From contig NW_027266275.1 of assembly GCF_022045235.1 (NCBI RefSeq), positions 79,608,001 through 79,672,000 on the forward strand: DNA of 64,000 nucleotides. Reading direction: 5' to 3'. The notes under the pieces were generated by a model. It was not told the DNA's origin and did no database searches. It saw only the letters and a list, made by a program, of their open reading frames with translations. The stretch is from Haliotis cracherodii. Its lineage: Eukaryota. Shown here piece by piece: positions 17,001 through 20,000 of the stretch. The position numbers were made by a program, and so were the translations under genes. How positions within the stretch are numbered: position 1 is the first letter of the stretch; each line of letters begins with the position of its first letter.

Positions 17001-20000
17001 AAACAGGGCATCATACAAGGGGCACACAGGACACGGGGCATCATACAAGGGGCACACAGGGCATCATACGAGGGGCACACAGGACACGGGGCATCATACA
17101 AGGGGCACACAGGACATGGGGCATCATACAAGGGGCACACAGGAAACAGGGCATCATACAAGGGGCACACAGGAAACAGGGCATTATACAAGGGGCAAAC
17201 AGGACACGGGACATCATACAAGGGGCACACAGGAAACAGGGCGTCATACAAGGGGCACACAGGAAACAGGGCATCATACAAGGGGCACACAGGAAACAGG
17301 GCATCATACAAGGGGCACACAGGACACGGGGCATCATACAAGGGGCACACAGGGCATCATACGAGGGGCACACAGGACACGGGGCATCATACAAGGGGCA
17401 CACAGGACACGGGGCATTTTACAAGGGGCACACAGGAAACAGGGCATCATACAAGGGGCACACAGGACACAGGGCATCATACAAGGGGCACGCAGGACAC
17501 AGGGTAGGATACAAGGGCACACAGAACACGGTAGATACAAGGGGTACGCAGAACAGGGTAGATACAAGGGGCACGCAGAACACGGTAGATACAAGGGGCA
17601 CGCAGGACACGGTAGGTACAAGGGGCACGCAGGATACGATAGATACAAGGGGCACGCAGGACACGGTAGGTACAAGAGGCACGCAGAACACGGTAGATAC
17701 AAGGGGCACGCAGAACACGGTAGATACAAGGGGCACGCAGGACACGGTAGGTACAAGGGGCACGCAGGACACGATAGATACAAGGGGCACGCAGGACACG
17801 GTAGGTACAAGAGGCACGCAGAACACGGTAGATACAAGGGGCACGCAGAACACGGTAGGTACAAGAGGCACGCAGGACACGGTAGGTACAAGGGGCACGC
17901 AGAACACGGTAGGTACAAGAAGCACGCAGAACACGGTAGATACAAGGGGCACGCAGAACACGGTAGGTACAAGGGGCACGCAGAACACACGGTAGATACA
18001 AGGGGCACGCAGGACACGGTAGGTACAAGGGGCACGCAGAACACAGGGTAGATACAAGGTGCACGCAGAACACGGTAGATACAAGGGGCACGCAGGACAC
18101 GGTAGGTACAAGGGGCACGCAGAACACAGGGTAGATACAAGGGGCACGCAGAACACGGTAGATACAAGGGGCACGCAGAACACGGTAGATACAAGGGGCA
18201 CGCAGAACACGGTAGATACAAGGGGCACGCAGAACACGGTAGATACAAGGGGCACGCAGGACACAGGGTAGATACAAGGAACAACCTGCTGAAAACTGAT
18301 GGATCGGGTTATGCCAATGAGGCATCTGACAAAATGGCTATCAAACTGAAATCCCAGCACCCGACATGAACCAGGGAGCATGCGTCTCATCAACATTCAG
18401 TTGTGATGGCAAACACACCCAGGTCAGAACAGTCAGTGATTCTGCCTCCCCTCGGAAGTATGAGTCTAATAAAACTGATTTTAGCCAGTATGCTGGGTTC
18501 ATAAAAGTCCATATCTTAACAAGTTAACTTGCAAGTGATGCCAAGAGACAATTTTGTGTGAGTTGATTCCAAAACTGTTTGGCTCAGGCTGCAAAATAAA
18601 TGACATATAGCTTCTTACTGCTGTTCTAAACAATTACCTTGGCAACTGATATTTCAGCAACTACAGTGTATTCACTAAACGTGCTGGTGCCCATGAAGTG
18701 GTAGAGTTGCTTCCCCTTACAAGTGAACCGGGACGTACCATCGGGCATTACACCAGCACCTTGAGTAGATCTGAAACATATTCCAAATATTGAATGTTAG
18801 ATCAAACTTCTCTACAGGACTAGACATAGACACTTGTCTGTTACTCCGACACTCGTGAAAATCTGTAAGGATGGCTTGTTTTCTAGACTTCTTCCAAAAT
18901 ATTGTTACATTGAACTATGTCTATAGTGAACAGGCTTATAACAAACTGACTTTTTAGGCCCCGGCCATTTGCTGTATATTTTCTCATATTAAATTGATGG
19001 ATATAACAAACACATACAGCATACTCACTTAGTGGTCCTGTGTGCTCTCTGTCAATGACGTTTTTGTTTATAACGAATTGTTATTGTCTGAACTGCTGAG
19101 CTGCTCATGTGTCACCAATCAGCTTTAGACATCGACGTTAAGTTTCAAATCAAAGATTAATTGCAGATGAACACGGCATCCCCAAATGTAATACATATAG
19201 AATACTAAACGAGCTCCCGTGTAATACCAATTTTATGAAACGAGTGAATAGTTCTGGTATCTGACGAGCGAAAGCGAGTCAGATACCACAACTATTCACG
19301 AGTTTCATAAAATTGGTTTTACACGGGAGCGAGTTTAGTATTTTATTTATTACTTGCCATTTACAACGTTTTTAGAATTATACTGTTGAGTATGAATAGG
19401 CTAGCTGACACCTACACGATCCACGGCAAAGTCCAATTGAGTTTAACAGAATAATACTTCAAACACGTCAAAAGTTGAAAGGTATGAATTTAATACCATA
19501 CAACGGTCCATCTTTAGAATTCACAAAATTATCGTAGGGCTAAGACATTCGCAACTCACATACTTTAACTTAGACTAACGACTGTCGTTGCGCTACAATA
19601 CGATCGCCTTGTGGAACGGGCCTTGTACCTCAAACCTTACAATAACGTCACAATACCCGATGACGTAATTTGTGGAATTTTGTTGCAAGACCCATCGGCG
19701 AAACAATGCCTAGTGACGTCACCCTAGCAACAAGGTTGCTGGGGTCATCGAGTGTGCTTAAGCTCCTCTCAGTGATCTATCAACTCCACACGCAATGTCT
19801 TTGAATAAGCCAAGAGATGTCGAGAGCTTACAATATTTGTTCGTGAAACGTGTTCCGAGAGTACACAAGCACGCGTTTTGGTATTACACAATGTGTAATA
19901 CAGCTGTATGTTTATTAAACGGGTGATCTCTTCACGGGCAAGTAATAAATAAACAATGCACACTTGTGTTACTTATCAAATGACATTATGCAACCATGTG

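Follow-up and report, generated by a model that had tools for sequence, protein, structure and literature searches.

Abundant short transposons with a long terminal hairpin in Haliotis cracherodii are probably non-autonomous Helentron-type elements

Helentrons (Helitron2; HLE2) and their non-autonomous derivatives, HINE and DINE-1, possess a canonical terminal layout, described in PMC4067079 and PMC11417382, in which a short inverted repeat at the 5′ terminus is matched by a repeat near the 3′ end that is followed by a stem-loop. Such elements, including the bivalve Cg_HINE/pearl families, lack a target site duplication (TSD), enter AT-rich targets in a fixed orientation, are non-coding, reach very high copy numbers and reside in genomes that contain genes for the Helentron Rep-helicase-endonuclease protein. 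Here, we describe elements with this layout in a stretch of 64,000 nt of the Haliotis cracherodii genome (assembly GCF_022045235.1, contig NW_027266275.1, positions 79,608,001 to 79,672,000 of the forward strand), hereafter the window, whose numbering is used for all coordinates that carry no locus or contig name. The elements belong to two families, B and C, and a third family, D, is built in the same way. We conclude, with a probability of about 0.7, that they are non-autonomous Helentron-type elements, most likely moved in trans by a Helentron Rep(HUH)-helicase-endonuclease protein; they are thus a known kind of element, unusual mainly for an end hairpin of approximately 150 nt. The original prediction for this DNA described an A-A′B′-B architecture, in which an internal segment is complementary to both termini, and compared it to that of DIRS retroelements. 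This appearance results from viewing the elements on the strand opposite to convention. On the conventional strand, a B element reads as a 5′ inverted repeat (TTATTACTTGCC...), the body, a 3′ inverted repeat (GGCAAGTAATAA) and a stem-loop of 150 nt that extends to the 3′ end (...TATTCTATAT).

The copy of B that was recognized in the original prediction, B1, occupies positions 19195 to 19948 of the plus strand (754 nt) when written hairpin-first, the reverse of the conventional Helentron strand. Its limits were set by alignment with a second copy in the window and by 28 distinct genomic copies, with a sliding ambiguity of 1-3 nt (AT/ATA) in their placement. From its first base at 19195, the left end (ATATAGAATACTAAAC) forms part of an imperfect terminal palindrome of 152 nt (19195-19346), detected both as a self inverted match (84.5% over 168 nt, spanning 19188-19353) and by DNA folding, with arms of about 70 nt and the loop GCGAAAGC. 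The segments A and A′ are simply its arms, which together form a single terminal hairpin. The subterminal, internally placed inverted repeat B′ (TTATTACTTGCC, 19347-19358) begins directly after the palindrome, with no base between 19346 and 19347, and is the exact reverse complement of the final 12 nt of the element, the right terminal inverted repeat B (GGCAAGTAATAA, 19937-19948). The proposed build is thus borne out, with one correction to its length: 12 nt of the 14-nt junction match first quoted belong to the element, and the remaining two bases (AT) are flank of that copy. The second copy, B2, lies on the minus strand at approximately 41887-42644; its identity to B1 is 92%, and the homology ends at the same bases.

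Family C repeats this build in a different sequence, as had been predicted. Element C1 (20596-21011, plus strand, 416 nt) starts with a terminal palindrome (20596-20748; 88.9% self inverted match over 20602-20744) that folds at −61.5 kcal/mol and contains GA/GA loops. The internal repeat ATTTATCATCCAA (20747-20759) shares 2 nt with the foot of the palindrome and is complementary to the right terminal inverted repeat TTGGATGATAAAT (20999-21011). Across family C the inverted repeats comprise 11-13 nt, and GATAAAT at the right end is invariant in 16/16 copies. The third family, D, was found at a single fetched locus (L007, approximately 2262-3750 of that locus, with its hairpin at approximately 3567-3748), where its inverted repeats match, by eye, at 13 of 14 positions. 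This D copy and a B copy lie in opposite orientations, with D starting 6 nt beyond the right end of B, an example of the clustering of these elements at each other's ends. The bodies of B, C and D are unrelated, yet the layout and the terminal words are common to all three: the hairpin end ATA[T/G]AGAAT, the seam at which ATTTTAT abuts TTAT, so that TTAT follows the hairpin foot in every family, and, at the opposite end or close to it, ATAA.

Such a layout might have arisen as a chance composite, in which a foldback miniature inverted-repeat element (A-A′) landed beside an element with short terminal inverted repeats (B′...B) and the pair was then amplified. The elements do land at each other's ends, as the D copy just described and the head-to-tail junctions considered below illustrate, which speaks for such an origin. 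We nevertheless regard this origin as scarcely credible, because three families of different sequence agree in this abutment and in their terminal words, both parts were kept in 40/40 scored copies of B and 40/40 of C, and the homology between copies ends at the outer ends and not at the seam between A′ and B′. Furthermore, the end words of B and C were found only at the places described, with 0.00-0.19 matches expected in shuffled sequences; together with the recurrence of the build in family D, this excludes chance as the source of the layout itself.

The search of the assembly (1.18 Gb in 80 contigs) returned 3424 first-look candidates for B and 3363 for C. Every one of the 40 candidates scored in each family was near full length, with identities of 92-100% for B and 98-100% for C, and the families are, by these sequence comparisons, young and very abundant. 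The consensus ends are ATATAGAAT...GGCAAGTAATAA for B (28 distinct copies) and ATAGAGAAT...TTGGATGATAAAT for C (16 copies). Copy number was taken from the assembly and not from reads, as contig depths are sums and not copy numbers, and raw-read depth disagreed with the genome search. The claim that the elements are non-autonomous was upheld, in that the longest open reading frame (ORF) in B and C elements encodes 74 amino acids while the candidates run into the thousands. Every Rfam match of the elements fell below threshold (25-60 bits against gathering scores of 70-200); the models concerned are of long microRNA precursors, and we take the matches as those of generic long hairpins. The bodies of B1 and C1 also carry clusters of CRE/AP-1-like octamers, at 19661-19721 in B1 (TGACGTAA and TGACGTCA) and at 20855-20924 in C1 (three TGATGTCA and one TGATGTAA), which are possible transcription-factor sites that travel with the elements.

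The hairpin is the most distinctive part of these elements. There is one per element in B and C, and across the families the palindromes measure 149-178 nt and fold at −59 to −72 kcal/mol. That of B1 (−59.1 kcal/mol) contains three tandem GA/GA internal loops and an asymmetric tip, in which ATATAGAAT lies opposite ATTTTAT. The arms are only about 85% complementary, and the mismatches are conserved across copies and across all three families; they consist of the tandem GA/GA loops and the tip, where ATA-YAG-AAT faces ATT-T-TAT. On the hairpin-first strand, the GA/GA loops (5′-CGAG/5′-CGAG) stand at matching distances from the tip in B, C and D, and the loop GCGAAAGC is found in both B and D. 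A subfamily of B (B2 and the copies at L012, L016 and L020) has Watson-Crick pairs in place of the first GA/GA loop. Sheared G.A pairs, like DNA loops of the GNA type, are stable, and the occurrence of the GA/GA mismatches on one strand in all three families fits a strand-specific role of a single-stranded form. The location of the G.A pairs and of the GAAA loop hints that the hairpin-first strand is the active one.

These properties bear directly on the DIRS comparison. A non-autonomous DIRS-like element would use its internal complement to template or align both ends, form a double-stranded circle and be integrated without TSD by a tyrosine recombinase. DIRS1-like elements do possess an internal region complementary to both termini, which meet there at the point of the joined ends; they produce no TSD and occur in molluscs (PMC3266345). 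The geometry is truly alike, since A′B′ is the complement of the joined ends save for a bulge of 2-4 nt. Nevertheless, DIRS1-like elements have inverted terminal repeats, genes for reverse transcriptase, RNase H, methyltransferase and tyrosine recombinase, a length of about 5-6 kb and exact internal complementary regions, in theory 100% complementary to the termini (PMC3266345); none of these is seen in B and C themselves, and no search for DIRS proteins was made in the genome. The left end of B (ATATAGAATACTAAAC...) and its right end (...GGCAAGTAATAA) share no inverted repeat, and the arms of the hairpin deviate from complementarity at conserved positions. In addition, among the 27 copies in which B′ was located, pairing between B′ and the right end is complete (12/12) in 16 copies, while the other 11 have one or two uncompensated mismatches, including a B′ variant that is common to six copies with an unchanged right end. 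B′ and the end thus drift independently, and the right end is not rebuilt from the internal copy. Non-autonomous DIRS derivatives of the size of B and C are not known to us from the literature, and HLE2 elements already provide a published counterpart of the layout of B, C and D. We therefore consider the tyrosine-recombinase reading very improbable, and we think that the likeness to DIRS is convergent, each system having to bring the ends of a single strand together.

Insertion without TSD, which both HLE2 and DIRS1-like elements exhibit, was confirmed in all three informative cases, with a sliding ambiguity of 1-3 nt. A B copy inserted in a 30-bp tandem repeat (L005) has left and right flanks that abut directly in intact units (gap of 1), a B copy in a 21-bp repeat (L026) shows no duplication by eye, and a B copy inserted in a C copy is represented in contigs of three organisms and in raw reads by the joints 20954 to 19195 and 19948 to 20955, with a 2-nt ambiguity. 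Contig pieces at B1 itself, from a run with the same species label and from another organism, end at 19194/19197 and restart at 19949 at the same depth. These pieces suggest an empty allele in which 19194 would be joined to 19949, and B1 may be an insertion polymorphism. Similarly, pieces at C1 in two organisms stop at 20594 and start at 21010/21011, with one base ambiguous, which suggests orthologous empty sites; we did not use them as evidence.

The target itself is a short word. When read on the hairpin-first strand, the left flank of B has A at −4 in 21/29 rows, T at −3 in 22/29 and A at −2 in 28/29, with −1 free (three of 30 fetched loci, L004, L018 and L025, were left out for want of one end, and the 29 rows count one copy twice, as B1 and the copy at L001 are the same). 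In C, the corresponding counts among 16 copies are 12 for A at −4, 10 for T at −3, 16 for A at −2 and 11 for T at −1. Insertion thus takes place after ATAN and before A or G. This target equals the element's own end word (ATAA), after which the element stops, and is complementary to the TTAT that opens B′, which is likewise complementary to the last four bases of B1. The complementarity between the ATAN target and the TTAT of B′ is also the reason why the palindrome often seems to extend a few bases into the flank.

The assignment to HLE2 rests on the agreement of several features with the published type. Short inverted repeats, within about 11-18 nt, lie at the 5′ terminus and near the 3′ end of B, C and D on the conventional strand, a 3′ stem-loop is present in all three families, although far longer than in published examples, and TSDs are absent. 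The genome also encodes the appropriate enzymes: 31 matches to the Helitron_like_N domain were found, 17 of them within open frames of 2612-3207 amino acids, and the one Helentron ORF whose domains were scanned contains OTU, DUF6570, Helitron_like_N, PIF1 and Exo_endo_phos domains. DUF6570 together with an endonuclease domain marks HLE2/Helentron proteins (PMC11417382), and by these published markers this ORF is that of a Helentron protein.

Several observations weigh against the Helentron assignment. The rule that HLE2 elements insert between T and T does not hold literally, as the site on the conventional strand has NTAT at the 3′ side of the element; there the 5′ neighbor of the element is T in 20/29 B rows and C in 9/16 copies of family C, and the base 3′ of the element is free, followed by TAT. 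The hairpin of B and C, at about 150 nt, is approximately ten times longer than the 5-10 bp palindromes of the HINEs described in PMC4067079, although families with long hairpins might be among the HINE termini tabulated in PMC4067079 and PMC7492417. The hairpin of B and C also abuts the repeat and reaches the very terminus, while in the mite HINEs 8-35 bp separate the palindrome from the 3′ end (PMC4067079). Both the G.A pairs and the GAAA loop are on the hairpin-first strand, opposite to the usual strand convention. Finally, an autonomous element with ends of the B, C or D type, the partner that the original prediction would have had sought, did not turn up in the three Helentron loci that were read (76 kb: 36 kb in all on contig C34, 20 kb on C12 and 20 kb on C9). 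These 76 kb contain no homology to B or C, no long palindrome of the B/C type, no ATTTTATTTAT junction and no left end of the form ATA[CT]AGAAT...CGAG. Two further differences set the families apart from described HINEs, namely the conserved tandem G.A mismatches of B, C and D and the lack of central tandem repeats or microsatellites in B and C.

The Helentron on contig C34 has homology among its copies that extends over more than 30 kb and includes nested repeats and a tandem array of 1.5-kb units. At this one locus our guess for its ends is (TTA)nTTCCGCC... and ...GCAACTATAT, beside a (TTA)n tract, on the strand opposite to the ORF; what the guessed ends have in common with B and D is limited to the short words TTATTA and CTATAT. 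The hairpin at L061:3328-3443, also considered, belongs to a different element. The C34 element itself, a giant Helentron (C34:37592700-37627000; loci L068, L061, L062 and L067), contains an open OTU-DUF6570-Rep-PIF1-endonuclease frame of 2691 amino acids and has close copies on contigs C6, C12 and C2. Adjoining it, at C34:37627635-37665606, is an array of about 25 units of 1.5 kb that read as 100% identical; end words of the Helentron type, namely (TTA)nTTCCGCC together with a GAAA-loop hairpin, seem to be present in each unit.

Alternatively, B, C and D could be moved by a single-strand system, of the HUH type or other, that is not a Helentron and whose enzyme has yet to be recognized, with a merely convergent likeness to HLE2 such as that seen for IS200/IS605 or IS91. 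The failure to find a partner in the three Helentron loci, the departure from the rule of insertion between T and T, the size of the hairpin and its reach to the terminus, unlike the HINEs described in PMC4067079, and a target that equals the element's own end word, as in HUH elements that target tetranucleotides, all speak for such a system. Intact Helentron ORFs are, however, plentiful in this genome, and the short words TTATTA and CTATAT beside (TTA)n at the guessed ends of one Helentron are those of B and D, though this comparison stems from a single locus. Furthermore, HLE2 families with other four-base targets have been published (PMC5148889). On balance a foreign enzyme seems unlikely to us, and Helentron-type elements mobilized in trans are the better account.

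A close published precedent in behavior is provided by FoHeli1/2 of Fusarium oxysporum, which are of the Helitron2 type. According to PMC5148889, they have asymmetric terminal inverted repeats and hairpins, and their target comprises four bases, one of them free (TNAT, followed by A after the insertion point). Some copies have inserted into or close to the ends of sister copies, and polymerase chain reaction gave evidence for joined ends; the orientation of their ORF relative to the ends is reversible, occurring on either strand. They differ from B and C in being fungal and autonomous, with a length of 5-6 kb, short hairpins at both ends and a 3′ repeat located 20-40 bp from the terminus.

Joined ends were also found here. 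The assembly contains 19 head-to-tail junctions of B and 38 of C, and none of the reversed control patterns for either family. Nine of the B junctions have a form that is 2 nt shorter, lacking AT, nine are plain abutments and one is a variant of such an abutment, while 35 of the C junctions have the shorter form GATAA-AT-AGAG and none is a plain abutment. The whole-strand minimum free energy fold of B1 predicts that 19948 pairs with 19347 and that 19197 pairs with 19346, so that the 3′ end would stack on base three of the element, bridged by the uninterrupted A′B′ strand, and leave a 5′ flap of 2 nt. The shorter B junction corresponds to this predicted pairing, with 19948 stacked on 19197 across positions 19347 and 19346. 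Splint-directed joining, a second nick site or the amplification of dimers could each produce the 2-nt-shorter junctions. A recombinase-like crossover of 2 bp, by way of the AT common to the C junctions, was also considered and fits poorly with the contig pieces at C1. The original prediction held that the elements move through a circular intermediate; of this, a joined-ends form, circular or tandem, is plausible. The junctions do not prove circles, as a copy inserting at the ATAA end of another would give the same junctions, and this consideration likewise tempers the Helentron reading. In the joined form, B-A and A′-B′ combine into a single long palindrome, one arm of which contains the nick site 12 nt from its end, an arrangement that resembles a rolling-circle origin.

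These features can be assembled into a tentative sequence of events. A Rep protein would nick one strand at both boundaries, on the left behind the ATAN of the flank and on the right behind the element's own ATAA/AAAT, and this strand would then be displaced. On the displaced strand the hairpin would form and B would pair with B′, whereby the continuous A′B′ segment would act as a splint that holds the 3′ end beside the 5′ end. The ends might then be joined into a circle, or copying might continue into a tandem. In either event the junction would re-form one long palindrome containing the nick site, so that the linear element could be regarded as a circle with one large palindrome that has been opened 12 nt inside one arm. 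Later opening of the junction would allow the element to insert after another ATAN without duplication.

The complementarity of TTAT to both target and end raises the further idea that this word at the hairpin foot serves as a DNA guide, as in IS608. Elements of the IS200/IS605 family, of which IS608 is one, and IS91 transpose by single-strand mechanisms that target tetranucleotides. By analogy, TTAT might pair with ATAN in the flank or target, or with the element's own ATAA, thus placing both cleavage sites in the same structural context, while A′B′ splints the ends for joining. B, C and D share with IS200/IS605 the absence of a TSD, oriented insertion beside a four-base word and a hairpin whose recognition would involve one strand; a possible further parallel is that the cleavage site might be recognized through base pairing to a short word within the element, next to the hairpin foot. 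The IS200/IS605 elements differ in that they are bacterial, use a Y1 HUH transposase without a helicase and have small hairpins at both ends, in contrast to the single hairpin of each element here. Aspects of IS608/IS91 behavior are cited in the reference list of PMC10288648. We offer the guide model as a speculation and consider it unlikely. If it were true, these would be the first eukaryotic transposons with DNA-guided choice of ends and target, and the moving strand would be the hairpin-first strand, with its G.A pairs and GAAA loop, opposite to the usual drawing.

The window also contains other repeats. Two long minisatellite arrays are present, one of about 70 copies of a 30-bp unit (15282-17400) and one of about 33 copies of a 75-bp unit (5795-8300). 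A far more abundant repeat starts approximately 140 nt to the right of C1 (21148-21300 onward), where the summed contig depth is 5-28 million, as compared to about 25-40 in unique flanks, and its sequence matches one arm of a 268-nt foldback at L063:3753-4020.

By recognizing B and C as elements of the HLE2 type, the analysis removes the tempting but wrong lead of non-autonomous DIRS elements and shows that ends of the Helentron type inherently have a DIRS-like geometry, in which an internal segment is complementary to both ends. For annotation of this genome, it implies that the B and C families, which fill thousands of sites, should be masked as HLE2-type. Bench work has yet to establish how Helentrons recognize and join their ends; to our knowledge, published experiments concern Helraiser, a canonical Helitron. 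The Helraiser work is reported in PMC4778049 and PMC5876387. For the question of how Helentron ends are joined, B and C are well suited, as young families with sharp ends, a target that equals the end word and one junction form that matches the predicted fold, in a genome that retains intact Helentron ORFs.

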